IMG/VR virus record: IMGVR_UViG_3300013094_000017
Span: 195,420 to 259,419 of that record
Reading direction: 5' to 3' (one strand)
Length of the DNA stretch: 64,000 bases
The translations under genes were made by a program, and so were the position numbers. The notes below the pieces were generated by a model. It did no database searches. It saw nothing but the letters and a program-made list of their open reading frames with translations, and was not told the origin of the DNA. Below, in pieces: positions 8,684 through 45,846 of this stretch (positions are counted from its first letter, which is position 1; every line of letters begins with the position of its first letter).

Positions 8684-8693
8684 GGGGTGCTAA

Positions 8694-25411: not shown

Positions 25412-25472
25412 TTTGTTTACCTCGTTGCGTTAGTGTCTGTGTAGTATACTATCGATTAAACCCTAAGTCAAC

Positions 25473-25667: not shown

Positions 25668-25966
25668 TAGTTTAGATCCTTATGATAGAATTGGTCCATT
25701 TGGTATAGGCTCACACAGGTTAGTACGAGGATACCTAATAGTCCCAATGTTGAGGGTGTGTTAACTTCATATGCTATAAGAGCAAGTAGCAAGGCCTTGC
25801 TGGTATATATCTTAATCATTTAATTTCTCCTAGTGTTGTAATGCATGAGTGCATTATATAGTCTAAGCGGCCTTATGTCAACTTCGGATGGCACGGATGC
25901 CTAGGGTGAGGATGAGGCCAAACACTAGGATCACTGCTATAGGTATTAGGGCTACTAGGTTGTACA

Positions 25967-26230
25967 TTATAATACTCCTTCTGATTCTAGTTCAGCTACT
26001 GCTTCGTTGAATAGGCTTTCTAGGTCGCGGACTTGGTTGGCCACTCTAATGTCTTTCCGACGCTTACGGAGTGCTGTGCCTTTCTGATACATTAAAGGGT
26101 GATGCAGTTTACAGTATACTGCACCATCCACTAGGTCCTTTGATCCACACTCGGTTGGATTATCGCCAAGCCATTGACATCCGAGTGCTCTAACCAGGGC
26201 TAGATCAAGTACCGGATTATTTGTTTTCAT
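25967..26230 (-). CDS. small Cys/His zinc-binding protein
   Basis: CQW...C...YCKLH (GcrA C-terminus-like pattern). Confidence 0.55.
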   Translation of the reverse strand: MKTNNPVLDLALVRALGCQWLGDNPTECGSKDLVDGAVYCKLHHPLMYQKGTALRKRRKDIRVANQVRDLESLFNEAVAELESEGVL

Positions 26231-26453
26231 TGTTAACCATCTTCTTTACTAGTTTTTCAGTATCGATGCCCATATCTTTTAATATGATCAGCATGACTGT
26301 TGATGTTTCTACTCGGCCGGCAGTGCGTTCCTGGTGTGCAATGATCACCAAGAGGGCAATCAAACTCCACCACTGCCAACCCCAACCTAAGTTGAGGGTG
26401 GCCAGTACTAGACCGTAGGTTAGATATAATGCTACGTTTAATATCTTATCCAT
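26217..26453 (-). CDS. small membrane protein
   Basis: hydrophobic N-half; coupled to the ATPase. Confidence 0.55.
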   Translation of the reverse strand: MDKILNVALYLTYGLVLATLNLGWGWQWWSLIALLVIIAHQERTAGRVETSTVMLIILKDMGIDTEKLVKKMVNNENK

Positions 26454-27313
26454 TAGGCACGACGCATACAGGTTGTTGAAGCCATAGCCTGCCAGTTGCT
26501 GGGAAAGCTCTTGCGCAGGTCAGCTACCTTAAGTACCATGCGTAGGCTTAGCTCTCTGAGCTTGGCCGCGTTCACAGTGATGAAGTTAACGATCTCATCT
26601 TTGGTCACCTGTTCAAACTCATAGTCATCTAACATACCTTCATTAACAATCTGCTTGATGCGCAGGATCTTCTCGCGGTCTGTGTCCATCTCTAAGTCGA
26701 TGTAATGGCAACGACTTTCGAGCGCATCTAAGTGGTCCTTCAATCGTTTGCTTTTCACATGATGGAATTTAATATTAGTGATAAAGATCGCCGCACCTTT
26801 GAACTCAAACCTGTCTGGAATGCCTTCACTGCGTAGCATACGGCTGTCAGTGTTCCAAGCAATGTATCGCTTCTTGCTACTATCTAATGCGCCCTTGAGG
26901 ATGTTAAGGCTAAGGTCTTCCATAAGAATACTGTCGCAGTCATCGAACACTATAACGTTGCCTTCGTCTGCGAATTCGTATAACTTAGCATATAGTCCGA
27001 GGCTACTCATCGCACCTTTGACCACTTCGTATTTAGGTTTCTTATTACCTAACGTGTTGAATAGATCGTCCTTGCTGAGTACTGCCTCAACACCAAAGCT
27101 CTTACCTACACCTGGGGGACCACTTACGATCATAGCACGTACATCGCCATGCTTGACTGCTTTGGTCATGTCAGTTAAGATACTGAAGCGAGCACTTAGG
27201 CGTTCAATGATCTCTTCGTCAGTCTCTAAAGCCACTGATAGTTCTAAGGCCTTAATCGCATCGGTATCAAACTCTAGTACTGATACGCCACCACTCTTAT
27301 TTGCTTTTGCCAT
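26453..27313 (-). CDS. AAA+ family ATPase
   Basis: GPPGVGKS Walker A, VIVFDDCD Walker B, ITN sensor, SR finger; early cassette. Confidence 0.88.
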   Translation of the reverse strand: MAKANKSGGVSVLEFDTDAIKALELSVALETDEEIIERLSARFSILTDMTKAVKHGDVRAMIVSGPPGVGKSFGVEAVLSKDDLFNTLGNKKPKYEVVKGAMSSLGLYAKLYEFADEGNVIVFDDCDSILMEDLSLNILKGALDSSKKRYIAWNTDSRMLRSEGIPDRFEFKGAAIFITNIKFHHVKSKRLKDHLDALESRCHYIDLEMDTDREKILRIKQIVNEGMLDDYEFEQVTKDEIVNFITVNAAKLRELSLRMVLKVADLRKSFPSNWQAMASTTCMRRA

Positions 27314-27575
27314 TTGCTTTCCTTGTTTTGTTAGTGTAAGTGTGTATTATAACACCTAGCCTAGGCCTTGTCAACCACTTCTTTTTCAACAGTGGCGCCT
27401 GTATACTTCTGGCCTGCCTTGTGAATCAATCCCCAAGGATAGTATGTAATAGTTCCGCCCGAAGCAGAAGTTTTTGTAGTGCCTGGTGTGTTCATGTTAT
27501 ACTCCGAATACCAATTTGCCTAATAAGAACCCTGCAAAAAACAGGGCCACCCAACCTACTAAACGATCTCCCCAG

Positions 27576-27782
27576 TTAGGCTCCATAGTATTCTGCTCCT
27601 TCATCATACTCGTCGGCAGTGTCTTCGTCTTCTTCAAAGAAGCCTTCCAACTCAGTAGCGCAGAAGTCCTCGACAGCCGCTTCGCTCATTGTGGTCATTA
27701 AGCTGGTTGCCAACCACATTGGGTCAACGATGCCTTCTACCATTAGATCATAAAGCCTGTTAGTGTATTTGCGTGTTGCCAT
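27576..27782 (-). CDS. early acidic hypothetical protein
   Basis: cassette upstream. Confidence 0.65.
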   Translation of the reverse strand: MATRKYTNRLYDLMVEGIVDPMWLATSLMTTMSEAAVEDFCATELEGFFEEDEDTADEYDEGAEYYGA

Positions 27783-27999
27783 TTTGTTTCTCCGTTGTGT
27801 TAGTGTAAGTGCATTATAGCAGGAGTTAGCCCAAATGTCAACCTATGTTCTTGCTATGATAGCCTGTGAGTAGATGATAGATCCCAGAACCTCTGCGGAG
27901 GAGGTCACTCCACCTTGTAGCTCCCAACCATTGGCCAAGGCTGCACGTATTTCCTTTTCAACCTCTGCTAAGGTACCTGTGACAATCTTGTATCGCATA

Positions 28000-28257
28000 T
28001 TAACCTTTCTCTGCTAGTTCCTGACACCAGACGCATCGTGTGCAGCCTAGGATGGCCTGTCTGCGAGGTTCCGGAATGGCCTCACCACAGTCCTCACACT
28101 CGGTTAGACTTGGTTGTGCCGCTTGCTCTGCTAGTCGACGCTGAACATCAGCTACCGCGTTCATGTTTAGGTGGATGGCGTGAATCTGGCCTAACTCTTC
28201 TTCGGCTCTGTTATCCATGAAGTTATCTTCTTGGTGCAATACATCTTTAGTTGTCAT
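28000..28257 (-). CDS. TraR/DksA C4-zinc-finger transcription factor
   Basis: CEDCGEAIPEPRRQAILGCTRCVWCQ after an N-terminal helix; 85 aa is TraR size. Confidence 0.88.
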   Translation of the reverse strand: MTTKDVLHQEDNFMDNRAEEELGQIHAIHLNMNAVADVQRRLAEQAAQPSLTECEDCGEAIPEPRRQAILGCTRCVWCQELAEKG

Positions 28258-28369
28258 TAGATTTGCCTTTGTGTTTGGTCTTGCGGGTGAACTTGGTACG
28301 GTCCTTCTCTACCTTTGCTTTGAAAGGAAGATCCTTGTTGAATAGTGCATAGTGTCTGCGTACTGTCAT
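28247..28369 (-). CDS. 40-aa basic peptide resembling ArfA (not in the ORF track)
   Basis: MTVRRHYALFNKDLPFKAKVEKDRTKFTRKTKHKGKSNDN; own early cassette. Confidence 0.5.
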   Translation of the reverse strand: MTVRRHYALFNKDLPFKAKVEKDRTKFTRKTKHKGKSNDN

Positions 28370-28577
28370 TTTAATCTTTCTGCTCGTTTTCATAGTGTAA
28401 GTATTATACTACCTTAAACCTCTGATGTCAACCCCTAAATGAGGTCAAGAGAAAGCCCGCAACATGCAGGCTTTTTCTTAGGTCTAGCTATATGTTAGGT
28501 TTAGTAACTTTACATACCATGCCCTTTCTTCAAAATTGATTTAAGTGTTATCTCTTACTAAACTACATTATACTATC

Positions 28578-29021
28578 TTAAACGAATCCTGTCAATGCTC
28601 GTTGGTATCGTTCCTCTTGGTGTCGTGCCCAACTCATCTCTAGGCCATGCTGTATACGCTCCCTATCAAACCATTCAGCTAGGGCAGGAAACTCGATTAA
28701 CGGTAGTTCTATACCATAGTCATCTTCGAACCAATCTGTTCTGATCTTCCAGGTCTCTGGTACCAAGTTTCGATGCACACCGATGTTGGTTTCGATCATT
28801 AATCGTTTCCATTTGCGAACCAATGTGTTTATGGTATTGGTCCAATAGGTATTGGCCCATGTGTTTGGTTGTGTCCTGGACAATGCTTCTCGAGCTTGGT
28901 CTAATCGAATGCCCAAGGCATCCAACTCATACTCAGTGGGGAATAGGTTCTTAGGTTCCCAATCGCCTAGATCTAAGGGCAATACCACTGCCTCTGGCTC
29001 TTTAGGTTTAAACCAACGCAT
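28578..29021 (-). CDS. hypothetical protein
   Basis: ORF track; coupled to the upstream gene. Confidence 0.55.
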   Translation of the reverse strand: MRWFKPKEPEAVVLPLDLGDWEPKNLFPTEYELDALGIRLDQAREALSRTQPNTWANTYWTNTINTLVRKWKRLMIETNIGVHRNLVPETWKIRTDWFEDDYGIELPLIEFPALAEWFDRERIQHGLEMSWARHQEERYQRALTGFV

Positions 29022-29292
29022 CTTCTAACTCCTCGGGAATGTCATTTAGGACCTTGCGCTTCTTAGTCTCTGCTATCAAGCAGGCCTGCACTTCTGCATT
29101 GCCGTTGGCAAAGCCTATGGCGAATAGGAATGCCAGTGCATCCTCTTTGGTGCTGGGATACTTAAGTTCCACTAGGTCGATGTCCTTGTGTCCGCATTTG
29201 ATTAGGATCTTTACTCGGTGATAACTGTTGGCATATCGAACTTTGAGTTTACCGTCGAGTCTACTAACGCCTGCGTGTGTGTATGATTTCAT
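29008..29292 (-). CDS. early hypothetical protein
   Basis: cassette upstream. Confidence 0.65.
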   Translation of the reverse strand: MKSYTHAGVSRLDGKLKVRYANSYHRVKILIKCGHKDIDLVELKYPSTKEDALAFLFAIGFANGNAEVQACLIAETKKRKVLNDIPEELEDALV

Positions 29293-29522
29293 AGGTCTTT
29301 CCTGTTCTATCAGTGTATAGCTAGTATACTACCATTAGCCCAAAATGTCAATAGACTTCTTTGGTGATATAGAATACTTCCGCGGGATACTTCTCTTTGA
29401 ACTCATCCGTGCCTGTGAACTTGTTCAGTTCAGTAGCATTGAAGAATACCTTATGCAATGCTGTCTTATGTGTCTTACGATCACTGACCGTTAGATAAAC
29501 TGATGTGGCGCGTCCTGCCATG

Positions 29523-29720
29523 TTAGACCTCTTCTATTGAATGTGGAGGAAAGCTGAACTTCAAACTGTTCCTGCCTGTGTTGGCTGCCTCTGCACGTTT
29601 GAATGCTTCAAGTGCGCCTTCTTTAGTATCTGCTTCTACGACGATGTGATCAGTCTCAGTGTGGTTAAATTCATCCCATCCCGGCATCTCATATTCGTAG
29701 CGTACAATGTATCTTGCCAT
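29523..29720 (-). CDS. early hypothetical protein
   Basis: cassette places the start at 29720 (MARYIV). Confidence 0.65.
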   Translation of the reverse strand: MARYIVRYEYEMPGWDEFNHTETDHIVVEADTKEGALEAFKRAEAANTGRNSLKFSFPPHSIEEV

Positions 29721-29780
29721 TTTGTTTCTCCGTTGCGCTAGTGTATGTGTTATTATAGCATACACTAGCCCAAAAGTCAA

Positions 29781-30038
29781 CTAGTATTGCACCACACGCA
29801 CAATCTGCGTTAAGTAAGCCCAACGCGGCTCACCTTTAGTGTCTGTGTAGTCACAACCTGCACGTCCATTCTTAATGTCTGCTTCTACGTTTTCTAACGT
29901 AACAGTTTCTGCAGGCTCACTGCCAAACCCACTGCGTATAACTACCACGCTACCTGCACGTACATCATCAATGTCAACGCCAGTGCCAGCAATGCCACTG
30001 CGTCTAATTGCGCTAATTAAATCTAATGTGTTGCTCAT
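29781..30038 (-). CDS. early hypothetical protein
   Basis: cassette places the start at 30038 (MSNTLD). Confidence 0.65.
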   Translation of the reverse strand: MSNTLDLISAIRRSGIAGTGVDIDDVRAGSVVVIRSGFGSEPAETVTLENVEADIKNGRAGCDYTDTKGEPRWAYLTQIVRVVQY

Positions 30039-30100
30039 TTTGTTTCTCCGTTTTGTTAGTGTAAGTGCATTATAGCGCATTTCTGCGCTATTGTCAACCA

Positions 30101-30310
30101 TTATTTTTCTTGCATTACAATGTTGTTAGTGCGTAATTGTTCTGCAGCCTGCGCAAATGCACGCACAACATCTTCTTCGTTGTTATAATCGCTACTAATA
30201 AAGCTAGCGTTACGTTGTGTTAGCGTGTCGTATGTAAAGCCTACAATAAGTCTAAACAGACCCTTGTTTGTTTTTAATACTTTTGCGTGTGCTAGTGTGT
30301 TTGTTTGCAT
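30101..30310 (-). CDS. early hypothetical protein
   Basis: cassette upstream. Confidence 0.65.
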   Translation of the reverse strand: MQTNTLAHAKVLKTNKGLFRLIVGFTYDTLTQRNASFISSDYNNEEDVVRAFAQAAEQLRTNNIVMQEK

Positions 30311-30375
30311 TTGTGTTGCTCCGTTTTGTTAGTGTAAGTGCATTATAGCACCCACACTAACATTTGTCAACCTCT

Positions 30376-30645
30376 TTATGCCTGTACGCAGGTACCTCTG
30401 ACCATGTGAAGGCTTCTGCGCCCAGTGCGTGTGCTGGCAGTTAACCCATGTGCATTTAACAATGCTTCCGTCCTTCCTGCTACCTTCTCGCCTAGCCCGT
30501 GATATACCACCATGCCCACATAGCGTTTACTTTCCCAGGTGCGGTGGTTTGCGCTGTCAGTCCATGCCATGCCTAGCTCTGCGCCCAATTGTTTGGCCGC
30601 GGTTCTTACTGCATTACGGAATTCTAATGTGTTTGCTGTTTGCAT
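30376..30645 (-). CDS. early hypothetical protein
   Basis: cassette places the start at 30645 (MQTANT). Confidence 0.65.
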   Translation of the reverse strand: MQTANTLEFRNAVRTAAKQLGAELGMAWTDSANHRTWESKRYVGMVVYHGLGEKVAGRTEALLNAHGLTASTRTGRRSLHMVRGTCVQA

Positions 30646-30703
30646 TTGTTTCTCCATTTGTTTAGTGTAAGTGTATTATAACACAGGTATTACCAAAAGT
30701 CAA

Positions 30704-30958
30704 CTATCTTTTGGGCCATATGGCGTCTAGAGTCTCTACCTTCTGGCGATTCATTTCCTGGGTGATCTGTTCGTCCTTACCATATACTCGTTCGCGGTAC
30801 ATGCGTTCGAAGCAACGACCCAGACCTTCTGCACTCTTATTACCCCAGGAGGTTTCGTAGCGACCATCGTCATTGGTCTTTAGATCTAACATCTGGGCTA
30901 TCTCTAGCCCAAATGCTTCTGCTTCTGCGGATGTAGAAAATTTACTTACGATCATCAC
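30704..30958 (-). CDS. hypothetical protein
   Basis: GGAG SD; second gene of a cassette. Confidence 0.55.
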   Translation of the reverse strand: MMIVSKFSTSAEAEAFGLEIAQMLDLKTNDDGRYETSWGNKSAEGLGRCFERMYRERVYGKDEQITQEMNRQKVETLDAIWPKR

Positions 30959-30963
30959 TGCTC

Positions 30964-31287
30964 CTATGCTAGGTTATAACGATAGATGATGCCCTGTGGA
31001 GTAACCTTCTTAACAAAGCCCAGCTCTGTCCAGTCCTCTTCCAACCAAGCCAATGTCTTAGGATTCTTAAGCCATCCTCCATCAATCTTAATGCTCACAC
31101 CCTTCTTACCATATGCTTCATAAATTTTGCCAGTGGTAATCTCGCCTAATGCCACCATCATCGCATCAACTTGACGGCGTAGAGAAAATGGATAGTGACT
31201 CTTGTTGTTTAGATTGCGTTGACGAGCGTCTTGTGATGCCCACCATTTGTTTGGTGCTTCTTCAGTGTTGAGTAATAGTGTTTTCAT
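30964..31287 (-). CDS. early hypothetical protein
   Basis: cassette upstream. Confidence 0.65.
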   Translation of the reverse strand: MKTLLLNTEEAPNKWWASQDARQRNLNNKSHYPFSLRRQVDAMMVALGEITTGKIYEAYGKKGVSIKIDGGWLKNPKTLAWLEEDWTELGFVKKVTPQGIIYRYNLA

Positions 31288-31459
31288 TTTGTTGCTCCGT
31301 TGTGTTAGTGTAAGTGCATTATAGCATAGGTATTACCTGTTGTCAACCCCTATCTTATGCCAAGAGAAAGGGCTGTGAACAACATTATGTCCACAGCCCT
31401 TATGATAGGGTGGGCTTACCGTAAGCCACTACCTCACAAACCACACCCCACGGAGCAAC

Positions 31460-31900
31460 CTATGCAAAGTCTTTGTTATATTGATTACGCTTTGCCTCAC
31501 ACTTGTCTTTAAACTCTGCCCAAGTGCCTGAAAAAATTACGTTGTCGTTGTTAGTGCCAACAGTGACAACCTCAACCTTGTTCTTGTAAACATGGTACTC
31601 ATATTCCTGCCAATTGTCCACACCTGGCTTAGGTGGATACAAGTAGAACTGCCCTGGACCATCTTTAAAGTGTGCTACCAACTGCGCGGCCAAACATCCC
31701 ATACCATTGGCAACCTTTTCTGTCTTAGCACCCAAACCATTTACAATTGCAATTGGGCTAAGGAATTCAGCAAGCTCTAAACCATGTCCTTCCATGTAGC
31801 CATCATATTGGCGATATAACTTAATGATTGGCGTGTGCTTCTCTTTGCCATTCTTTTGAGTGTAAGTGTCATAAACCCATGTTAAACTGCGTGTACCCAT
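31460..31900 (-). CDS. early phage protein (MGTR...YRQYDGY family)
   Basis: cassette upstream; motif I recall as common in phage early genes. Confidence 0.7.
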   Translation of the reverse strand: MGTRSLTWVYDTYTQKNGKEKHTPIIKLYRQYDGYMEGHGLELAEFLSPIAIVNGLGAKTEKVANGMGCLAAQLVAHFKDGPGQFYLYPPKPGVDNWQEYEYHVYKNKVEVVTVGTNNDNVIFSGTWAEFKDKCEAKRNQYNKDFA

Positions 31901-31981
31901 TTTGCTTCTCCGTGTTGTTAGTGTAAGTGCATTATAGCACCCCCTAGGGGTTTTGTCAACCCCTTTAAGCGGGGTCTTACT

Positions 31982-32416
31982 CTAGGAGTCTTGTTCTTCT
32001 TCCTCGTACTCAGGTTCATCGTACGGTGGGTCAGTGTCAATAACAACCTTACCGAATGTAAGCTCAGCACCATCACTGCCTACTGCAAACTGCTCTTCGA
32101 AGTCTACTACGTTGCCACCTTCCATCCATAGGCTGTCCGAAGTATCGTTGATGTCACTAAGTAGGATACACCCAATGCCACCTGCATCCACAGGATACTC
32201 ACGGCCTTGCTCATCCTCATAGTTACCATCACCGTGGGCGGTACTGAAGTAAGCAAAGCGAACACCATTGGCTAATTTGAATACACCTTGTGCACCGCGC
32301 CAGTTGTCTTGTCCCTTAGGAAAGAACAGCTCACACGCTTCTTGCCACTGTGGGTGCATTACATAGCACAAGTCACCGATCCAATACTTTCCTGCTGGCA
32401 TAGTTCCGTAATTCAT
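31982..32416 (-). CDS. early hypothetical protein
   Basis: YWIGDLCYVM, STAHGDG, VDAGGIG; cassette upstream. Confidence 0.7.
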   Translation of the reverse strand: MNYGTMPAGKYWIGDLCYVMHPQWQEACELFFPKGQDNWRGAQGVFKLANGVRFAYFSTAHGDGNYEDEQGREYPVDAGGIGCILLSDINDTSDSLWMEGGNVVDFEEQFAVGSDGAELTFGKVVIDTDPPYDEPEYEEEEQDS

Positions 32417-32478
32417 TTTGTTTCTCCGTTGTGTTAGTGTAAGTACATTATAACATCGGTATTACCACTTGTCAACCC

Positions 32479-32694
32479 CTAGATAGCATCAGCCTCTTCA
32501 ACGTTATACTGCGTGATGTCGTCCTCAAGGATCTCAATAGCCGTCACACGCACTTCGTTATCAGTGGTCATACCGCCGAGGACATTCTTGTAGTCCAAGA
32601 GTTCTTGTGCATACTCAAGAGCCTGGTCTCGGTTATCGAACGGTTCGTCGTGTGTGATCTCAGCACGCACTGTGGTGTAGATGACTGTCTTCAT
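32479..32694 (-). CDS. hypothetical protein
   Basis: coupled second gene of a cassette. Confidence 0.55.
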   Translation of the reverse strand: MKTVIYTTVRAEITHDEPFDNRDQALEYAQELLDYKNVLGGMTTDNEVRVTAIEILEDDITQYNVEEADAI

Positions 32695-32897
32695 TCTGCT
32701 GTCTCCATTGACATCTCTTGCAAGCGGTCATACGCATTAACAAAGTCCTCGCAAAGCAGACGCATACGATGCATAGCCTGCTCTTCGCTGTCGCTTAGGC
32801 CAATGTCTTCAAAGTCGTAACCGTCTTCTAGAACATTAACGCAATCGCGCAAATCACCTAAGGTGTTTTCGAACCTGCAATAACTCATATTAGCCAT
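32691..32897 (-). CDS. early hypothetical protein (MSYCRFENT family)
   Basis: cassette upstream. Confidence 0.7.
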   Translation of the reverse strand: MANMSYCRFENTLGDLRDCVNVLEDGYDFEDIGLSDSEEQAMHRMRLLCEDFVNAYDRLQEMSMETAE

Positions 32898-32959
32898 TTT
32901 GTTTCTCCGTTGTGTTAGTGTAAGTGCATTATAGCAGGTAAAACCTGCTATGTCAACCC

Positions 32960-33160
32960 CTAATTAGCAAACTCTTCTATGCAATCTAATACTTCTTCTA
33001 ACTGCATAATAACATCTTCGATGTTGTTGTGGATAGTGTAGCAGACATCCTCGTCTTCAGGAAGTGCATCTTTGTAGACTGCAAATGCTTTCTGTTGCAA
33101 GCGGTTTGCAGTGTGAAGTGCTTCGATAGCGGCTTCTAGGTGTTGTTTGGCTAGTGACAT
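32960..33160 (-). CDS. early helical hypothetical protein
   Basis: cassette upstream. Confidence 0.65.
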   Translation of the reverse strand: MSLAKQHLEAAIEALHTANRLQQKAFAVYKDALPEDEDVCYTIHNNIEDVIMQLEEVLDCIEEFAN

Positions 33161-33215
33161 AATGTTTCTCCGTTGTGTTAGTGTAAAGCTATTATAGCAC
33201 CAATGGTAAAACCTG

Positions 33216-33437
33216 TCAACCGATATAGTGAACTATTAATCCAACTACGCCTGTGAGCAGCATCACACCGTTCACAACGATTAAGCTGGCCTTGCGCCAT
33301 TCTATAGCTATAGCAAACCATATAGCACCGCCTACGCACAGCAACAGGGGCCCTTGTGGGTAGTATCCTAAGCTGTTAACTGCTGTGCCAACGATTAAGA
33401 TCGTTGTAGCTATCCATTCTAATATTAAGATTCTCAT
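33216..33437 (-). CDS. small multi-pass membrane protein
   Basis: three hydrophobic helices; ATG at 33437 overlaps the upstream stop. Confidence 0.6.
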   Translation of the reverse strand: MRILILEWIATTILIVGTAVNSLGYYPQGPLLLCVGGAIWFAIAIEWRKASLIVVNGVMLLTGVVGLIVHYIG

Positions 33438-34018
33438 ATGTCTAAAGTACTTCCTAATCCTTTGTGATAGAACAAATGTTGTCCCACCTTGGTTATATAC
33501 TGCGTACGGTCTGCCCAAGCCGGCGATACATATGATGCATGATACATTAAAGCCTGCTGTAGGGGTCTTACACGTACCTTATCCACCAGCACGCTATGCG
33601 CAATCATTTGACTCTCAGCCCACAACACACCCTTGGGCTTGTCCAACTTCTTCTTAAGTGTCCACGAGAACTGTGCCTTTGCGTGGACTACCTTGCACAC
33701 ACTGTTACCCCAATGGCCCGTCTTGAGTCTGTTTAAGGTTACCTGTGCAACTGCGTATTTGCCCTGCACCGGCTCCACCCCAGCTTCGTAGTATACATTC
33801 TCTGCTAGACAAGTCAAGTCATTTTTTGTGTAATGGACATTCTCATCTGTCTGCACAAGAAAAGCCTTGATCTCACGGACCTCATTGTGGACCTCAGTGA
33901 TCTCACGTTGCTGGAACGACAGCAATGCTACCACTGCCGTTCCAGTTGCCGCTATGAGTAAATTACTCTTCGTCAACACTGTCTGCTTCCCACATCTCTT
34001 GGTTTTCGGAGATGGCAA
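33434..34018 (-). CDS. SleB-like cell wall hydrolase (Hydrolase_2)
   Basis: CLAENVYYEAG, AVAQVTLNR, QFSW, YHASYVSPAW, VGQHLFY; N-terminal anchor; start may be internal. Confidence 0.88.
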   Translation of the reverse strand: MPSPKTKRCGKQTVLTKSNLLIAATGTAVVALLSFQQREITEVHNEVREIKAFLVQTDENVHYTKNDLTCLAENVYYEAGVEPVQGKYAVAQVTLNRLKTGHWGNSVCKVVHAKAQFSWTLKKKLDKPKGVLWAESQMIAHSVLVDKVRVRPLQQALMYHASYVSPAWADRTQYITKVGQHLFYHKGLGSTLDI

Positions 34019-34535
34019 AAGTATCGTCTAACTCTTGCGGTAGTTGATCACGAGCGCCTTGTGCATCACCCCAGTCTTGGTAGTAGTCATCATTGCCGTC
34101 TTGATAGATGCCAGCGAACTGCATACCACCTTCATAGTAGTAGCCAAGCACATCAAAGCCCGCTTCTTCCAAGAACGCATAAGCGCCTACTGGCGGAGCC
34201 CAAGCACTGTCAAAGTGCAGGGTGATGCTGTGGAAGCCGTCAATGGTCTCATTGATCTCGTAGTATTCATCCTCACTGCCAACATCCCACTTGGTTCCCC
34301 AATTGCTCACGCACCAGTCATACCAAGTGCTGTAGCCATATTTCTCAAGGTTGGCTTCATATAGGGCCTGTAGTTCAGCATCATCAGTACCTGGAGCACT
34401 GGTGATCATCAAAGCCTCGGGCACAGGAGCGAACTCCTGTAGCAATACCCCACGCTTAAAGGCCTCTTCGACACGCTGGATCTGACCAGCATCTTTGTGA
34501 GTAAGTGTTACGATATTCTGGCACCAGTTTGGAAT
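33963..34535 (-). CDS. DUF1281/YubB-like phage protein, predicted ATT start
   Basis: ATT-CCA-AAC-TGG-TGC (PNWC) just after the cassette SD; WCVSNWGTKWD and FDSAWAPP motifs. Confidence 0.75.
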   Translation of the reverse strand: MPNWCQNIVTLTHKDAGQIQRVEEAFKRGVLLQEFAPVPEALMITSAPGTDDAELQALYEANLEKYGYSTWYDWCVSNWGTKWDVGSEDEYYEINETIDGFHSITLHFDSAWAPPVGAYAFLEEAGFDVLGYYYEGGMQFAGIYQDGNDDYYQDWGDAQGARDQLPQELDDTFAISENQEMWEADSVDEE

Positions 34536-34603
34536 TTTGGGTTCCTACCTTTCTTAATTTGTTAGTGTAAGTGCATTATAGCACCTTTCGGTGCTATGGT
34601 CAA

Positions 34604-34858
34604 CTAGCATTCGTAAAGTTTAACTCCAGGATCTAACTGCTTCAACTCATTCGCCGCCTGTGTTAGAAACTTAAAATTCCTACGAACAGTGGCCGCATCT
34701 AGCTCGCCATCACAGGTCAAGTTCTCTGGTGATAGTTTGCCATCGATGATATCTGCAATGTGTTGTCGGTCTTGGGCAGTGGCCAACGACAGAGGTTTAT
34801 TCCCCCATATGGCACGCCATTGGTTTTCTGCTTGGATAAAGGACTTTAGTGTTTTCAT
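34604..34858 (-). CDS. early hypothetical protein
   Basis: cassette upstream; LSPENLTCDGE. Confidence 0.7.
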   Translation of the reverse strand: MKTLKSFIQAENQWRAIWGNKPLSLATAQDRQHIADIIDGKLSPENLTCDGELDAATVRRNFKFLTQAANELKQLDPGVKLYEC

Positions 34859-34924
34859 TACGTTTCTCCGTGTTGTTAGTGTAAGTGCATTATAGCACCT
34901 ACACTAATCTCTGTCAACCTCTAT

Positions 34925-35197
34925 CTAGGCCATCTCTACCATGTTAGCAGGCACACGCCAAGCACCTTGTGGTGTATCGATAACGATGTTCTTAATAGCG
35001 ATCTTCTTAACGGTGCCTCGAATGGTTTGACGGCTACGGCTTGAAGTAAACTGGACAGCGTCACCTACACGGAATGTTCTTAGGTTCAATCGAGCGTTAC
35101 GGCTTCGGACATACTTGATTGACTCTACGATTGAGTTGATATCCGCATCAGTCAATTCTGAAGTTAGGATTAGTTCATTGATTTTGGCTACTGACAT
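34925..35197 (-). CDS. early SH3/KOW-like small protein
   Basis: FRVGDAVQF...GTVKKI...WRVPANMV. Confidence 0.6.
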   Translation of the reverse strand: MSVAKINELILTSELTDADINSIVESIKYVRSRNARLNLRTFRVGDAVQFTSSRSRQTIRGTVKKIAIKNIVIDTPQGAWRVPANMVEMA

Positions 35198-35250
35198 AGT
35201 CTGCTCCTTAAGTGTTTAAGTGTGTAGTATAACATCGGTATTACCAAATG

Positions 35251-35532
35251 TCAACCTAAAAAGAATTCAATCTCTTTAATAAGATCTTCCTTCACTGGCT
35301 TGTCTTCGTCGCCATGCACATACGCGGCGAACTCCTCTTCATGCCAGCGTTCAAATGTGCTAGTCATTAGCCAATTGAATATCTTTTCTGCTGACTCCTG
35401 CTTAACCTTAGCGCGGAACGCTTCCAATGCCTTAGCACTGTCGCCTTCTGTCCAGTAGGTAAGTCCGTCTTGCTCAACTAGCAGGCCTGCTTCGATTGCT
35501 AGTTGTTCTGTTGCGGAAAAGGTTGTGCTCAT
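35251..35532 (-). CDS. hypothetical protein
   Basis: ORF track. Confidence 0.5.
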   Translation of the reverse strand: MSTTFSATEQLAIEAGLLVEQDGLTYWTEGDSAKALEAFRAKVKQESAEKIFNWLMTSTFERWHEEEFAAYVHGDEDKPVKEDLIKEIEFFLG

Positions 35533-35656
35533 GCCATTACTCCTTGTTTAACCTTGCGCCAATCCCAACGTGCCTGTGTGTATGCACGACGGCTAAGTGT
35601 AAAGCCTGGGCAGTTCTTGCAGGCCCAAGCTACGAAGTGAACTTGCTCTACGTTAC

Positions 35657-35812
35657 TCATAAGCCACAAGCCTCGTAGAAGCGTCCATAGTCAAAGCGAC
35701 TGTTCATTGCCTTAGCAACATCTGCAAAAGCCTTAGCCGCTTGCTTGCGTGCATCCAAGTCTGCGATACCTGCTAGTTCTTTTGCCATTGCAATAAAGTG
35801 TTTACGTGACAT
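35657..35812 (-). CDS. 51-aa early protein (not in the ORF track)
   Basis: cassette-driven MSRKHFIAMAKELA...NSRFDYGRFYEACGL. Confidence 0.6.
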   Translation of the reverse strand: MSRKHFIAMAKELAGIADLDARKQAAKAFADVAKAMNSRFDYGRFYEACGL

Positions 35813-35865
35813 CTTGTGTTTCTCCGTTTTGTTAGTGTGTAGCTATTATAACACCGGTTTTACCT

Positions 35866-36111
35866 TTAGTCAACCTCAATTAACTTTAATTCGTAGAACA
35901 TATCCTGCGCCAAGTCTACGCTGACAAAGTCAATAGCATACTCTTCGCCACTCTCTTCACCTGTACCGTAGAAGCGACCTGTACTGAGATCCTCTCCCAG
36001 ATCTAATAAGTCCTGGTCAGTATCCCAATAGTCAATGCGGATGCCCTCGCAATTGAATGGAACATACACTGCGGCACGGCCTACGATCTCTTTAACCTTA
36101 TCTAAGCTCAT
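35866..36111 (-). CDS. hypothetical protein
   Basis: coupled second gene of a cassette. Confidence 0.55.
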   Translation of the reverse strand: MSLDKVKEIVGRAAVYVPFNCEGIRIDYWDTDQDLLDLGEDLSTGRFYGTGEESGEEYAIDFVSVDLAQDMFYELKLIEVD

Positions 36112-36494
36112 ACCTTCTCCTTTGCAACAATCTTAGGTTCACGTCCACTGCCATCGCTGATGTAGCCTAACACTAAGGTCTCCATAGCCCGCTTAGCCTC
36201 TTGCACGGCTTCCCAAGCAAGGTCTTCTGCGGTGCCGTCTTTGAATACTTCCATGGCATCCTCGTACAAGAAGCCACCTACATAAGCATCACCTAGCTCG
36301 ATGTCCTTGTAGTAGGCCACAGCGCGAAGCATGAACCAATCTAATTCATACGCATCAATCTTGCGACAAAGGTCTTCAACGTCTGTTACAGTGTCATCAA
36401 AGCAGTCTCTGGGGCTAATATCTTCCCAGGACTTTTCGATCTTAACAGTAAAGCCATCCATTTCAAGCTGGCCTAGTGTTTCCCAATGGCGCAT
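36108..36494 (-). CDS. early hypothetical protein
   Basis: cassette upstream. Confidence 0.65.
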   Translation of the reverse strand: MRHWETLGQLEMDGFTVKIEKSWEDISPRDCFDDTVTDVEDLCRKIDAYELDWFMLRAVAYYKDIELGDAYVGGFLYEDAMEVFKDGTAEDLAWEAVQEAKRAMETLVLGYISDGSGREPKIVAKEKV

Positions 36495-36548
36495 ATCATT
36501 CTCCGTTTGTTTAGTTTAAGTGCATTATAGCACAGGTATTACCAAAGG

Positions 36549-36710
36549 TCAATCCCAAAATTTATTAATAATCTCTTCTGCTTCCCTCATAGCACCATCA
36601 AAGTCACCAGCACCTAAGCAGAAGATCTCTCCGCTGTAGTGTAAGCACCAGCAGTTCAAGTGTAGATCAAATTCTACATCGTAACCAGTTTCTAATACAT
36701 GTACAGCCAT
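36549..36710 (-). CDS. small hypothetical protein
   Basis: GGAG SD before ATG 36710. Confidence 0.5.
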   Translation of the reverse strand: MAVHVLETGYDVEFDLHLNCWCLHYSGEIFCLGAGDFDGAMREAEEIINKFWD

Positions 36711-37028
36711 AATATTCTCCTTATAAACTTGCGGTATCAATTTCTACGTCCGCTAGGACAATAGTAACATCCCACGGCTTCTTAGCACCTAGTAGGCCTG
36801 CTGCGAGTCTTTGTGCGGCAAAGCTAGACTCTGCTTTCACTTCAATCTTCTTGCTCTTGTAGAACGCTATATACATATATGTTCGCATAGTGTACTCCTT
36901 GTTGTTAGTGTGTAAACATTATAGCGTAGGTTTTTCCATTTGTCAAGCATTATATTGGTAATATTTTGGTTGACAGGTATTACCAGCGATGCTATACTAC
37001 GTATACACTAACAACACGGAGAACTAAA

Positions 37029-37223
37029 ATGGGTACACCACTAATTGGAATGACGCTTGCAGATGCCTGCAGTATTGTTAAGGCCTATGCTGATCTACAA
37101 GGCTTACCGTTCTTAGAAGGTTTGATGGAAATGGATGCAGGCTATGATGACTTGGACCTTGAGGATCAAAGGGCCTGCAACATGGTATTGAAAGCTGGTC
37201 GAGAGATGTTTGCCCCAGTGTAG
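37029..37223 (+). CDS. early hypothetical protein on the divergent cassette
   Basis: plus-strand cassette 36970-37031. Confidence 0.65.
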   Translation: MGTPLIGMTLADACSIVKAYADLQGLPFLEGLMEMDAGYDDLDLEDQRACNMVLKAGREMFAPV

Positions 37224-37437
37224 TATAGTGGGAGTAGGTACGCAGGACACATCCTACTCCCCCGTCCTGCTTGTTTTGGGCTAACATAGGCCACTACCTA
37301 ACCACTGATCAGAACGTGGTCGCAGGTTAACACAGGCGCGGCATCACTATGTATAGCCTCATAGGGTTTCCTATAGGAGCAATCGATCAGCATCCTCCTA
37401 ACTCTCTCCCTCTTTATGCCTGACGTTCACGGTTTAC

Positions 37438-37514
37438 TGGTGCTCCGTCAGGGATTCGAACCCTGCCTCCCACGTTATGAGCATGGTACTCTCTACCTAG
37501 TGAGTTACCAGAGC
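37438..37514 (-). tRNA. tRNA with CAT anticodon (elongator Met or Ile2), CCA encoded
   Basis: cloverleaf GCTCTGG/ACGGAGC (G7-A66 mismatch), ACTC/GAGT D stem, CCATG-CTCATAA-CGTGG, CAGGG-TTCGAAT-CCCTG; lacks initiator features. Confidence 0.88.
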
Positions 37515-37566
37515 AAAAACTTATACATTAATAATACTATATCTATTCAGTTTTGTCAACTGTTAG

Positions 37567-38287
37567 TGGGCCTACCTTGACTCGAACTAAATACTATTAT
37601 GAAACTAGAACTTACTCCGCAGCGTATTGCAGCTAACAAAAAGAACTGCCTACTAGGAGGAGCAGCATTTGCCGCTAAAATGTCATCAGCATATAATGCT
37701 AATCCCAGCTATTGTAATCAATGCAGCACTATATTACCTCAGAGCAAGAAAAACAATAAATTCTGTAATTCCTCTTGTTCTGCAAAATATAGCAATGCAC
37801 GCAAGGACTATTCAAAGTTCACACCAGGACCTGTTCCTAAACCTAAAGATCCTACAGCGGGGTCAGCACCCTATAGTACATTATTCCGTTGTGAGTGTAA
37901 ACATTGCGGAGTAATTAAGCTGTATCGATCTCAAACCAAGTATTGTCCTGAACACAGGGATCTTTATAGCCACGCAGGCCGAGCTAAGTATTGGTTCACA
38001 TTTAACGTGTTTCATTACCCTGATCTGTTTGATCTAAACTGGGTTAACTCTGTGGGATTTCGAAGCTCTTCTAATCCCAATGGAGTTACTAGGGATCATA
38101 AAGTAAGTGTCAATGACGCCATTCGAAACAACTATGATCCCTATTACATAAAGCACGTACTCAACTGTGAGCTAATGCTATTCGCTGAAAATAATAAAAA
38201 GAAAACCAAGTCCTCTATCACCTATGCAGAGCTAGTCATACAAGTTAACCTGTATGATCAGTCTCTGACCAACTGAGCTACAGGCCC
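37567..38287 (-). pseudogene. tRNA gene (Ile-like acceptor) split by an HNH gene
   Basis: 5' piece 38287-38263 GGGCCTGTAGCTCAGTTGGTCAGAG; 3' piece 37587-37567 GTTCGAGTCAAGGTAGGCCCA; acceptor halves GGGCCTG/TAGGCCC pair. Confidence 0.8.
37599..38276 (+). CDS. HNH-type homing endonuclease with zinc-binding repeats
   Basis: CNQC...FCNSSC, CKHC, RDHKVS...HVLNCELM..ENNKK; TAAATA-N5-ATG. Confidence 0.75.
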   Translation: MKLELTPQRIAANKKNCLLGGAAFAAKMSSAYNANPSYCNQCSTILPQSKKNNKFCNSSCSAKYSNARKDYSKFTPGPVPKPKDPTAGSAPYSTLFRCECKHCGVIKLYRSQTKYCPEHRDLYSHAGRAKYWFTFNVFHYPDLFDLNWVNSVGFRSSSNPNGVTRDHKVSVNDAIRNNYDPYYIKHVLNCELMLFAENNKKKTKSSITYAELVIQVNLYDQSLTN

Positions 38288-38297
38288 TAAAACTACA

Positions 38298-38375
38298 GTG
38301 TGAGATCCCAAAGTATCCTTATGGGACGATTTATCTATCCGCTGCGCAGTACTATGTACATCGCCAATCTCACAC
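38298..38375 (-). ncRNA. candidate 78-nt structured late ncRNA upstream of the split tRNA
   Basis: TATAAATA (38381-38388, minus) then 5 nt to GTGTGAGA, which pairs with terminal TCTCACAC; internal CGAT/ATCG and TCCCA/TGGGA stems. Confidence 0.45.
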
Positions 38376-38427
38376 TTCTTTATTTATAACTCAAATGATG
38401 TTATACTACACTATATGACTTATAGTA

Positions 38428-38706
38428 TTACCTAGAATAAGTTAACTTGTTCAACAGTTCCTGCCCACAGACTCCCTCAGCAATGTCCATGAGTGCAGCC
38501 ACAGTAGGTTGATGAGCATGTACTTGAGTGGGATCATTTCGCCCAGAGATTAATCTAGCAGTCTGAATCTCACGAGCTCGAACACTGGCACCTAGAATCA
38601 AATAGAATGATTCATTGGCGAACCGCTCCATGGCAGGAGTATTATCATATACCTGCTGAACTTTTCTCACTATCTTCTTTGGTTTATATACTTTAACTTC
38701 ACTCAT
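38428..38706 (-). CDS. rpoZ: RNA polymerase omega subunit homologue
   Basis: ERFANESFYLILGASVRAREI and PTVAALMDIAEG match omega motifs (NRFDLVLVAARRARQ / TTVIALREIEEG). Confidence 0.8.
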   Translation of the reverse strand: MSEVKVYKPKKIVRKVQQVYDNTPAMERFANESFYLILGASVRAREIQTARLISGRNDPTQVHAHQPTVAALMDIAEGVCGQELLNKLTYSR

Positions 38707-38719
38707 ATCATTTCCTTAA

Positions 38720-39790
38720 GGTTATGCAGCGGGGTCACTACATATATAGTGTTATACTATAAGATACATTATACACTATATACACTAGTAAGTCAATGTA
38801 TACTGTATATAGTATAGAATATAAGCTATTAAGATATAGTGAGTATAGTATATAGTATAAGAGATCTATATATACTATACAGCGGGGTCACTACATATAC
38901 AGTAATATAGTATACAGTAATACAGTATACTGTATATACGGTGGGACCTATCGATATATAAGAGGGTATTAGGCAAGGTCAGAACCGCTAGGCCAAGGTC
39001 TAAATATGGTCAAGAATGGTGGCCAAATGGTGGATTCATGGGAGGTTTTTCTGTGAGATTATGGTAAAATCACTATAGAAACTGTGGGAAAATTGCTGCA
39101 AAATTTTTTGAAGGTGGGTGGGGAGAGAGGCTATGCTAGAATACTTCCCCAATGGTTCACCTATTTTCTCATACCTTGTTCACCTATTTTCTCATACCTT
39201 GTTCACCTATTTTCTCATACCCTGTTCTTACTATTCTCACAGTTCTCATGCAGCGGGGTCATACTGTATATAGTATATATAGTAATAAGTTCCCACTATA
39301 GCAAAAGCTCTTTAACTAGGTGTATAGTTCTAGCATACTCTCTTATACTGTATATAGTGTGTATACACTGCATGTATTAGATATACTGCATATAAGGTTA
39401 TATGTATTAGATATAGTGTATATAGTGTATAGTATTGACTTCTAGTAGTATATAGTGTATACTGACTGTATGTATAGATTATGAGTAGCAGAGTATATAT
39501 AGATACCAGCACTTATACATAGTCTATTAATATTGTCCTCACCCACTCAAGGATCTACTATGTTTGCCATATGGTCAGCTATTATACTATTATTGCTTAA
39601 TGGTTCTATACTCAGTGCAGTATTTGTTTTAACCATATACATGATCAAGTGCGGTTAATGAACCTATTAGATTTCGTATAGTTTAATTTATTCACTGTAT
39701 ATAAACTCATAGTTTAGTTATACGTATATATTTAAACTCTCAAGATCTTCCTCTAACTCCTAGAGTATCTAGTAAATATCCATTTGGATC
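38720..39790. other. TA-rich non-coding region with repeats; candidate origin or genome terminus
   Basis: dense TATA/TATAG/TATAC tracts; CAGCGGGGTCA at 38727, 38880, 39251; gene polarity switches here. Confidence 0.5.
39155..39223 (+). repeat. 23-bp tandem repeat x3
   Basis: GTTCACCTATTTTCTCATACCTT x2 plus a 1-nt variant, then a degenerate fourth unit. Confidence 0.92.
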
Positions 39791-43855: not shown

Positions 43856-44245
43856 TGAGTCATTTTAGAGATTGGTATCAAGAAAACGATGTAGAGATTA
43901 CTTGGGCCTTAATTGGTTCTTTAACTGCATTTGGTATTACAGAACTAGGTCAAGGTGATTACCTGTGGGCTACTTTTGATTTTGCCTTTGCCTGTATTAA
44001 TTTTATGTTTAGAAAGGCATAATATGGCTTATGTTGACGTTGAAGTAGAAGTAGAGTTAGATATGTTCAGTGATAAGGAACTTATCGAAGAATGTAAATT
44101 ACGTGGAATGTCTGTTGATGGGGGTGTAGAACATTACTCTGCTCATGATGTCATCCGTGACATCTATAATGCCAAGGCCCGTGGACAAGACTACGAGCCT
44201 TTGTTACGTGATCTATTCTATCGCACACTTGGACGGGTATGCTAA
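43837..44245 (+). other. two small hypothetical genes (about 43855-44022 and 44024-44245)
   Basis: ORF track with likely internal starts MSHF and MAYVD. Confidence 0.5.
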
Positions 44246-45846
44246 CTGATATAGAAATTAATCAAGGGTACAAGCCCTTAAAGCTCTCAAAGCTGGCCTC
44301 TGGGCTAGGCATTGGGGGTAGCGTACAAGAGTGGGGGCCAAATAAGGCCAAGATAGCATTTGATGAAGTTAAGAGCCTTACCCAGGGTAAATTGATCTTA
44401 GTCACAGCCATCACCCCCACCCCCGCAGGTGAGGGTAAGACCACAACCACCATAGGCCTAGCTGATGGGCTACGCAAATTAAACTACTCAAGCATAGTAT
44501 GCCTACGTGAGCCAGCCCTGGGCCCGGTGTTTGGTATGAAGGGTGGGGCTACCGGGGGTGGTCATGCCCAGGTCTACCCTATGGAGGATATCAACTTACA
44601 CTTTACAGGTGACTTCCACGCAGTTGCCTGCGCACACAACTTACTCAGCAGTATGATTGATAATCACTTACATTGGGGCAATGCGCTACGGTTAGACACT
44701 AGCAAGATCACATGGCGCAGAGTCAGCGAAATGAATGACCGTAGCTTACGCAGTACAGTAGTAGGGTTAGGAGCTCATAACAGCATCACCCGTGAAGAGG
44801 GCTTTGATATAGTAGTAGCCTCTGAGGTAATGGCTATATTGTGTCTAGCTGAAGATTTCAAAGACCTAAAGAAACGTCTGGGTAAGATCACAGTTGGGTA
44901 TACCTTAGATGGTAAGCCCGTTACAGCTAAACAGTTAAAGGCGCATGGGGCTATGGCAGCCTTACTTAAAGATGCTGTCAACCCTAACCTAGTACAGACT
45001 TTAGAAGGTACCCCAGCACTAGTTCATGGCGGCCCATTTGCTAACATAGCACACGGATGTAATAGTGTTATTGCTACCAAGTTAGGTTTGAAACTTGCTG
45101 ACTATGTGGTAACAGAAGCAGGCTTTGGTGCTGACCTAGGTGCTGAGAAGTTTATTAATATTAAGTGTCGTAAGAGTGGATTACGGCCAGATGCAGTAGT
45201 CCTTGTGGCCACTGTTAGAGCAATTAAGTACTGGGGTAATTATGATAATTTGGACAAACATATGGCTAACATCAAAGGTTGGTATAACTTACCTTGTATC
45301 GTGGCTATTAATCGTTTTGCAGACGATTCTGATGAAGATATTGCTGAACTAATAGAACATTGTCGAGAAAGAGATGTTGAAGCAGTAGAGTGTACACATT
45401 TTGCAGATGGCGGGGTAGGTGCTCAAGAACTAGCACACGAAGTTGTCTTGGCCATTGACCAATCAAGCAAGCAGATGGAATTGACCTATGCTGATGAAGA
45501 TACATTATGGACTAAGATAAATCATATTGCCAAGAGAATATACGGTGCCGAAGGTGTTCATATGGATGCTAAAGTATCAGCACAGTTAGATCTACTACAG
45601 AAACATTATGGAAAGTATCCAATCTGTATTGCCAAAACACAGAGCAGTTTCAGTGATGATCCTACAGATAAGAACTCAGCAACAGACATACACACACTAA
45701 CTGTGCGTGAGCTACGCCTGTGTACCGGAGCAGAGTTTATTGTGGCAGTATGCGGTAACATCATGACCATGCCAGGACTACCAGAACGGCCAAACGCTGA
45801 ACGTATTGGTATTGACCGACAAGGGCGTATTGAGGGATTAGACTAA
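44239..45846 (+). CDS. fhs: formate--tetrahydrofolate ligase (auxiliary metabolic gene)
   Basis: TPTPAGEGKTTT, GGATGGG, INLHFTGDFHA, HGGPFANIAHG, VTEAGFGADLGAEKF, CIAKTQ, MTMPGL. Confidence 0.97.
   Translation: MLTDIEINQGYKPLKLSKLASGLGIGGSVQEWGPNKAKIAFDEVKSLTQGKLILVTAITPTPAGEGKTTTTIGLADGLRKLNYSSIVCLREPALGPVFGMKGGATGGGHAQVYPMEDINLHFTGDFHAVACAHNLLSSMIDNHLHWGNALRLDTSKITWRRVSEMNDRSLRSTVVGLGAHNSITREEGFDIVVASEVMAILCLAEDFKDLKKRLGKITVGYTLDGKPVTAKQLKAHGAMAALLKDAVNPNLVQTLEGTPALVHGGPFANIAHGCNSVIATKLGLKLADYVVTEAGFGADLGAEKFINIKCRKSGLRPDAVVLVATVRAIKYWGNYDNLDKHMANIKGWYNLPCIVAINRFADDSDEDIAELIEHCRERDVEAVECTHFADGGVGAQELAHEVVLAIDQSSKQMELTYADEDTLWTKINHIAKRIYGAEGVHMDAKVSAQLDLLQKHYGKYPICIAKTQSSFSDDPTDKNSATDIHTLTVRELRLCTGAEFIVAVCGNIMTMPGLPERPNAERIGIDRQGRIEGLD

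Follow-up and report, generated by a model that had tools for sequence, protein, structure and literature searches.

A phage-encoded homologue of the RNA polymerase omega subunit with an altered N-terminus in a freshwater jumbo-phage lineage

Why does a tailed phage carry a gene for omega, the smallest core subunit of bacterial RNA polymerase, and what would such a protein do to the polymerase of its host? This question is raised by a short gene in the window, i.e., the whole 64,000-nucleotide stretch analyzed here, which is the final 64 kb of a 259,419-bp IMG/VR record (IMGVR_UViG_3300013094_000017) estimated to be 73% complete. The record is that of a tailed phage with genes for a large terminase subunit, a UvsX-like recombinase, helicases, a primase, a DnaB-like helicase, a ligase, and an endolysin, and in its large terminase subunit it shares 55% identity with the Pseudomonas jumbo phage PA5oct, the nearest cultured relative. 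DNA of this phage recurs in lake and freshwater metagenomes (24 studies, 2016-2020); a search for RNA runs with this DNA stretch found none. The gene and its ribosome-binding sequence are located as follows.

38428..38706, minus strand: viral omega (RpoZ/Rpb6-like) gene of 92 codons plus stop, recognized by ORF, profiles, alignment, and predicted fold
38711..38717, minus strand: Shine-Dalgarno sequence AAGGAAA, 4 nt 5′ of the omega ATG, read from the sequence

An ATG-start ORF spans these gene coordinates exactly, and its peptide begins MSEVKVYKPKKIVRK. The protein is divided into a basic arm (residues 1-17), a segment standing in place of MARVTVxD (residues 18-24), and the omega core (residues 25-92), with helices at residues 23-28, 33-57, 67-77, and 82-89. 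An earlier note on this DNA had proposed a phage-encoded omega with both core motifs, and both were found in the alignments: the first, NESFYLILGASVRAREI, fits NRFxLVLxAAxRARx / NRFxLVxxAAxRARxL, and the second, QPTVAALMDIAEG, fits KPxVxALREIxxG. Searched alone, the protein matches PF01192 (RNA_pol_Rpb6) with an E-value of 2.5e-4 and TIGR00690 (rpoZ, NCBIfam) with an E-value of 3.8e-4, and no other family was matched in the Pfam/NCBIfam search. The corresponding scores, 21.4 and 20.5 bits, lie under the cut-offs of 26 and 23.6 bits; the profile search suggested in the earlier note thus gave a match by E-value and fell short by score, although PF01192 is matched by all nine close relatives (best E 9.6e-8) and by 29 of 36 wider relatives (best E 5.3e-15). 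The sub-cut-off score is not disqualifying, since the omega-family matches of two Verrucomicrobiota genomes reached merely 22-23.5 bits in the identical test.

Homology is also evident from comparisons with known omegas. The best 16 matches of the viral protein in a PDB sequence search are all omega chains, a profile of the relatives likewise retrieves omega chains (best E 2.2e-4), and hhalign aligned the viral group with 14 named proteobacterial omegas over 54 columns (probability 96.6%, E 5.1e-10). An AlphaFold2 model built from a 36-sequence alignment has a pLDDT of 90.6, and all 50 structural matches listed for it are omega chains with Z-scores of 6.0-7.8, the best (Z 7.8) superposing 69 residues at an rmsd of 2.7 Å, where a Z below 8 is by itself not decisive for a helical protein. 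This model supersedes an earlier one from nine sequences, which had a pLDDT of 73.7 and weak Foldseek E-values. A word search identified eight close relatives and one more that is 44% identical; their contigs reach 346 kb, and dN/dS of 0.11-0.19 among close orthologues indicates purifying selection. The minus-strand ORF at 38428..38706 is a real gene for a homologue of RNA polymerase omega, as the earlier note had held; the protein is conserved and under selection, and possesses the omega fold and core motifs.

The main departure from cellular omegas lies at the N-terminus. All 14 named proteobacterial omegas start with MAR[VI]T, whereas viral omega lacks this start and, as the earlier note had recognized, has a basic extension in its place; this extension is conserved in the close relatives, whose N-terminus reads MSExKVFKPKKIVRKxRPVYDNTPA. 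The basic arm comprises the 17 residues that precede the omega-equivalent segment, six or seven of which are lysine or arginine. Both the sequence alignment and the structural superposition pair viral residue 19 with residue 3 of Escherichia coli omega, and the equivalents of omega residues 2-5 (A-R-V-T) are Q18-V19-Y20-D21. Hence, viral omega falls outside the class of proteobacterial site-1 omegas, which have M-A-R-(V/I)-T and a free N-terminus at residue 2. Among the 14 columns invariant in proteobacterial omegas, F17, R26, R28, V46, L49, and E51 (as D) are retained, whereas all five N-terminal invariants are gone, A2 to Q18, R3 to V19, T5 to D21, and D8 to P24 among them. Within the core motifs, F, R-A-R, V, and A-L are retained. 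In addition, K43 is changed to Q, R50 of ALREI is changed to M, and an insertion of 5-7 residues extends helix 2. Across the viral clade described below, the cellular invariant R50 is M, I, or another residue, and a lysine is retained at the R3-equivalent position in some subclades.

A profile search of 1.8 billion representative proteins returned 71 at E < 1e-3, most of which are omega-like proteins of 70-100 aa without a MAR start; the short betaproteobacterial omega is the only MAR-starting type recognized among the 71. In a maximum-likelihood tree, 52 non-MAR rows are separated from all 24 MAR-type omegas (alpha-, beta-, and gammaproteobacteria) by a branch with support of 99/87, and this viral clade falls within none of the cellular groups sampled. 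The viral omega of the window belongs to a subclade (99/95) in which the basic N-terminal arm is common to the members. Most proteins of the viral clade have neither the long arm nor MAR, and a MAR start was found in none of the 52 rows and in none of the six phage-context lineages. The tree is unrooted and based on an alignment with few columns, with the 52 representatives taken at 50% identity, and no donor lineage is therefore claimed; the viral clade forms an old, distinct group and not a set of recent host copies.

The genomic context was phage-like in all six lineages checked. The window's own group resides on phage-like contigs; in a second lineage (P0082), the omega-like gene stands at a divergent junction of small genes; a third (P0012) is represented by a 106-kb contig on which the genes from terminase to UvsX follow one another as they do at window positions 3956-9755; the contexts of a fourth (P0013) and a fifth (P0088, longest contig 287 kb) are phage-like; and a contig gene of the sixth (P0106) matches PF18454 (Mtd_N), a domain of phage receptor-binding proteins. 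Among cultured phages in INPHARED, no copy of viral omega was detectable: neither megablast with 6 kb nor tblastn with viral omega found a match in 50,697 phage records. A tblastn search with the distant representative P0009 reached two 240-kb records named 'Acinetobacter phage MD-2021a' and annotated rpoZ (E 0.1), which are probably host DNA. PF01192 has no match in PA5oct, PHROGs contains no family for viral omega, and a pattern scan of IMG/VR matched the source phage alone, the patterns being too specific.

The setting of the gene differs from that of a cellular rpoZ, and the elements concerned are the following.

38768..38796, minus strand: omega promoter TTGACT-17-TATAAT, near-consensus sigma-70 (11/12), about 60 nt upstream of the ATG
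38723..38761: leader box CAGCGGGGTCAC (plus-strand letters), 39 nt in the 5′ leader of omega, conserved in relatives
39435..39463, plus strand: mirror-image promoter TTGACT-17-TATACT, an inverted repeat of the omega promoter, serving the rightward arm
25063..38796, minus strand: leftward arm of small genes with 23 TTGACA/T-N16-18-TATAAT-like promoters, about one per small gene
37438..37514, minus strand: tRNA-Met gene with its own promoter, conserved downstream neighbor of omega in relatives
37599..38276, plus strand: inserted 225-aa ORF (phrog_23051), separating omega from tRNA-Met here

Omega is the first gene of the leftward arm, and its position at the divergent junction, followed by the tRNA-Met gene, is conserved in relatives. 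In cells, rpoZ often stands in the order gmk-rpoZ-spoT. This context has been noted for Acidithiobacillia (PMC6416229), and the viral locus, with omega heading a phage arm and then tRNA-Met, is not of this cellular kind. In three related loci, the -10 hexamer of the omega promoter is identical (TATAAT) and the -35 hexamer is TTGACA instead of TTGACT. Between the two outward arms of small genes (23-49 kb) lies an AT-rich, repeat-laden control region (38707-39530), which could serve as an operator array or as an origin; the 39-nt box, a possible operator, occurs in three copies in this region (at 38723, 38876, and 39247). Three tandem 23-nt repeats are also observed there, at 39155-39227. Many of the leftward promoters have the form TGnTATAAT, and judging from these elements the arm looks like an early region read by the sigma-70 polymerase of the host.

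Several minor structures flank the gene. The 3′ end of the inserted 225-aa ORF overlaps a tRNA-like remnant (about 38200-38290, minus strand), which is called by neither ARAGORN nor Rfam. Right after the omega stop codon, a branched 80-nt hairpin with a U run is found at 38297-38376 (minus strand); the 231-nt region containing it folds with a z-score of -3.0 relative to shuffles, and the hairpin could act as a terminator or represent a small RNA. The tRNA-Met gene is the sole Rfam match in the omega region.

The host of the phage is probably a proteobacterium, as suggested by several sequence comparisons. Scored against named omegas, the phage profile gave 56-57 bits for betaproteobacteria, 48-55 for gammaproteobacteria, 32-44 for alphaproteobacteria, and 20-29 for actinobacteria, and it gave no score against omegas of Bacteroidota and Verrucomicrobiota. 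Furthermore, the 23 promoters on one strand (25063-38796) point to a host whose sigma-70 promoters are canonical, and away from Bacteroidota. The formate-tetrahydrofolate ligase (FTHFS) gene at 44239..45846 is uninformative on this point, since its product is about 55% identical to those of many Proteobacteria and other phyla; pmoC, for which a search was made to infer the host, is absent. The FTHFS (535 aa, plus strand) belongs to the rightward arm and is conserved in relatives.

Searches of the 259-kb record for transcription proteins gave no match at E <= 1 to Rpb1_2 or Rpb2_6, nor to the T7-type RNA_pol model, the latter search being one without a positive control in the control panel. The sigma factor models Sigma70_r2 and Sigma70_r4 likewise had no match at E <= 1, and Sigma70_r4_2 gave two weak matches far under its cut-off (best E 0.0175, 13.4 bits); these models would miss a sigma factor of the T4 gp55 type, and about a quarter of the genome lies outside the record. 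Since the record yielded no sigma factor, the idea of the earlier note that this omega favors a late sigma factor of the phage is unsupported.

The earlier note had called for a structure prediction with β′, and complexes were predicted with E. coli β′ residues 340-942 and 1131-1407. The model scored 0.77 in three runs, and the best of three controls scored 0.00; among reference pairs, 51 of 78 solved complexes attain this mark, as do 2 of 108 mismatched pairs. The runs have at least 65% of their contacts in common, and the partner pLDDT is at least 69. The modeled interface comprises viral residues 18-23, 26, 31-48, 62-72, and 85-90 and β′ residues 362-364, 414, 417-419, 474-488, 613-618, 905-912, and 1360-1372, of which 474-488 (region D), 905-912 (region G), and 1360-1372 (C-terminal tail) are parts of the canonical omega interface. 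The prediction thus came out in favor of the canonical site at the level of likeness in a model. Such a pass indicates likeness, not binding, since omega-β′ complexes have been solved many times, and it may reflect memory of these structures. According to the model, viral omega would dock on host β′ at the canonical omega site, and it would then replace host omega in newly made or omega-free polymerase.

The predicted position bears directly on the starvation signal ppGpp. Site 1 of the polymerase consists of omega residues 2-5 together with β′ R362, R417, K615, I619, and D622, and in E. coli it is omega residues 2-5, together with β′ R417 and K615, that bind the phosphates of ppGpp (PMC7676912). 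Omega without residues 2-5 abolishes ppGpp binding (Kd > 100 uM; PMC7676912), and the MAR motif serves as a marker of site-1 ppGpp binding (PMC6416229). In the complex model, viral residues 18-23 are placed against the β′ stretches that contain R362, R417, and K615, while residues 1-17 are left without placement. Furthermore, the same leftward arm as omega includes a second gene of interest.

28000..28257, minus strand: TraR/DksA-type zinc-finger gene (PF01258), 85 aa

Its product is a member of the PF01258 family (E 4e-10, 40 bits, cut-off 24.9), has YbiI (E 6.9e-7) and TraR (E 7.8e-5) as best PDB matches, and combines an acidic N-terminal helix (DNRAEEELGQ) with a C4 finger; it probably binds the secondary channel of the polymerase. 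TraR itself occupies this channel and, without binding ppGpp, acts as a mimic of DksA plus ppGpp (PMC7676912). The presence of such a gene in the arm of omega strengthens the reading based on ppGpp. A related arrangement is found in another lake jumbo-phage lineage (L117), where positions 7459-8473 encode a TraR-like protein of 84 aa, an 80-aa protein, an omega-like protein of 86 aa (P0088), and a SutA-type protein of 70 aa whose RNA polymerase-binding domain scores 29.4 bits against a cut-off of 29.3. The TraR-like gene, two genes upstream of the omega-like gene, is homologous to that at 28000..28257 (phmmer E 1.7e-19); the local search for TraR-like genes in relatives covered 20-kb pieces of contigs. 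Three polymerase-binding modules within four consecutive genes argue for placing the omega-like gene in a polymerase-takeover kit, although adjacency is not proof of joint function.

On these grounds, the following mechanism is proposed. Viral omega would be made from a strong host-type promoter, probably early, and would take the omega site on host β′. There, the A-R-V-T of omega would give way to Q-V-Y-D behind a 17-residue lysine-rich arm, and with omega residues 2-5 replaced, a polymerase carrying viral omega should bind ppGpp at site 1 poorly or not at all. The TraR/DksA-type protein would sit in the secondary channel, the place of action of DksA and ppGpp site 2, and the two proteins together would uncouple the captured polymerase from the host alarmone; the basic arm could block site 1 or contact nucleic acid or another factor. 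This combination, i.e., an early viral omega on β′, an incomplete site 1, a TraR-like protein acting at site 2 and the DksA position, and transcription uncoupled from the alarmone, is preferred here as a tentative reading whose probability we put slightly below even. The proposal of the earlier note, that viral omega could blind the polymerase to ppGpp, is a plausible hypothesis. A broader reading, in which an old and diversified clade of viral omegas together with TraR-like proteins (and SutA-like proteins in other lineages) strips the captured polymerase of both ppGpp control points, a two-part 'alarmone-blind' conversion by subunit exchange, and in which the arm adds a function found in no cellular omega, is possible and rather doubtful.

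Several considerations weigh on the ppGpp-based reading. Site 1 has been documented for proteobacteria with MAR-type omega, and the argument fails if the polymerase of the host has no site 1. In E. coli, the effects of site 1 are much smaller than those of site 2 and loss of rpoZ has a mild phenotype (PMC7676912), so it is doubtful whether blinding of site 1 by itself would be of selective value. Viral omega would also have to displace host omega already on the polymerase, and the lysine retained at the R3-equivalent position in some viral subclades counts against the reading as well.

Among the other explanations, the one that survives best places the function in the arm: bound to β′, viral omega would use its basic arm to tether nucleic acid or a phage factor, or would shift the competition among sigma factors, the loss of ppGpp binding being incidental. 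Loss of omega is known to change sigma usage in E. coli and cyanobacteria. The arm residues K5, K8, K10, K11, R14, and K15 are conserved across the 99/95 subclade under purifying selection, the arm has a pLDDT of 80-86 without a helix in the deeper model, and other phage lineages cluster omega-like genes with TraR-like and SutA-RBD modules. The trait common to the clade, however, is the loss of MAR and not the arm, which most members lack in its long form; moreover, the sigma search of the record yielded no sigma factor or partner, and the complex model left the arm unplaced. We consider this explanation unlikely.

A second possibility is that an extra omega acts as a helper that keeps β′ folded and polymerase assembly running after host shut-off, with the N-terminal change being drift. 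Omega is described as a promoter of polymerase assembly (Minakhin et al. 2001 via PMC7598289; PMC5811629), and viral omega keeps the core residues and the predicted contacts with β′. The N-terminal change, in which five invariants are lost and the replacing segment is itself conserved, is not drift; no β, β′, or α to be assembled with was detected in the phage record, and the viral clade forms an old, distinct group and not a set of recent host copies. Hence, a role in assembly or stability alone seems quite improbable.

Viral omega could alternatively be a subunit of a divergent multisubunit polymerase of the phage itself, either encoded outside the recovered part of the genome or beyond the reach of Pfam. 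Phage multisubunit polymerases are not known to include an omega, and against such an enzyme stand also the lack of Rpb1_2 and Rpb2_6 matches in 259 kb, the host-type sigma-70 promoters of the promoter-dense arm, and the confident predicted docking on E. coli β′. The nearest cultured relative, PA5oct, depends on the host polymerase (PMC7318152). This explanation is very unlikely, even though the record is estimated to be only 73% complete, several giant ORFs (1112-4270 aa) have no annotation, and the polymerase subunits of jumbo phages are highly divergent (PMC7598289). Least credible of all is a decoy or inhibitor that occupies the omega site to harm the host polymerase or to mask it against a host factor or a defence system: canonical docking is predicted and R50 of ALREI has become M, I, or another residue in the viral clade, but the phage appears to need the host polymerase throughout infection, and omega is dispensable in E. 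coli (PMC7676912), which makes blocking of its site a weak route to inhibition.

Compared with bacterial RpoZ (PF01192, TIGR00690), the nearest form of which is the short betaproteobacterial type (GKVGLEMLKKVPG), viral omega is alike in size class, helical fold, and core motifs; F17, R26, R28, V46, L49, and the C-terminal G-x-E-L-L-x-K/R-V are common to both, as are the contacts predicted with β′ region D, region G, and the C-terminal tail. It differs by the absence of MAR, R3, T5, and D8, by the 17-residue arm, the helix 2 insertion, and the change at R50, and by belonging to a phage arm of small genes and to a clade of its own (99/87). In the preferred reading based on ppGpp, the closest functional parallel would be TraR of the F plasmid and TraR-like proteins of phages, which, as viral omega would, bind host polymerase as small mobile-element proteins and act at the ppGpp/DksA control point without a need for ppGpp (PMC7676912). 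TraR, however, is an accessory factor in the secondary channel, whereas viral omega would replace a core subunit about 60 Å away; a TraR-type gene is co-encoded with viral omega here, and stands two genes upstream of the omega-like gene in L117.

Phages re-program host RNA polymerase via sigma factors, inhibitors, and covalent modification, and T4 gp55, AsiA, and T7 Gp2 are small phage proteins of this kind. These are specificity factors or inhibitors without homology to core subunits, whereas viral omega is a core-subunit homologue. Giant eukaryotic viruses have Rpb6/RpoK homologues inside complete virus-encoded polymerases. These belong to the same Rpb6/omega superfamily, and differ from the present case in that no other polymerase subunit was found in the phage record. 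Re-programming of host RNA polymerase by phages is treated in PMC7318152. Literature searches for a phage-encoded omega or rpoZ found nothing relevant, the literature searched gave no description of a core subunit being replaced by a viral paralogue, and a 2026 review of jumbo phages has no mention of omega, TraR, DksA, or ppGpp. The homology to omega is already visible in databases, since some metagenome pipelines label relatives 'RNA polymerase subunit omega'. What we rate as new is the apparently virus-specific clade of a known core subunit, with an altered functional end and in a takeover context; this suggests, without amounting to proof, that rewiring of the host polymerase by viral omega is a new route.

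If viral omega enters the host polymerase, it would constitute a natural 'site 1 mutant' with which the roles of the two ppGpp sites could be separated, and its gene would mark a broad lineage of uncultured freshwater jumbo phages. It would also be a new counter-measure against restriction by the stringent response, which restricts phages and is countered by them (PMC13483052). Quick biochemical tests are feasible with a protein of this small size, and the 52 non-MAR representatives at 50% identity are sufficient for comparative work.

Other genes of the window merit brief mention. The loci 13110-13826 (minus strand), 17946-18704 (plus), 50853-51689 (plus), 54748-55452 (minus), and 16015-16632 (plus) comprise several homing-endonuclease genes interspersed among the replication genes and a 205-aa 'DNA polymerase' fragment, which suggests a split polymerase gene. 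Two cell-wall hydrolase genes are present, one within the leftward arm (33434..34018, minus strand; Pfam Hydrolase_2) and one at 51780..52349 (plus strand; PHROG endolysin families). Finally, a 1643-aa ORF at 58189..63120 (plus strand) has no PHROG match, and its N-terminal approximately 95 residues alone are 38% identical to a 1626-aa ORF at positions 28872-33752 of the genome.
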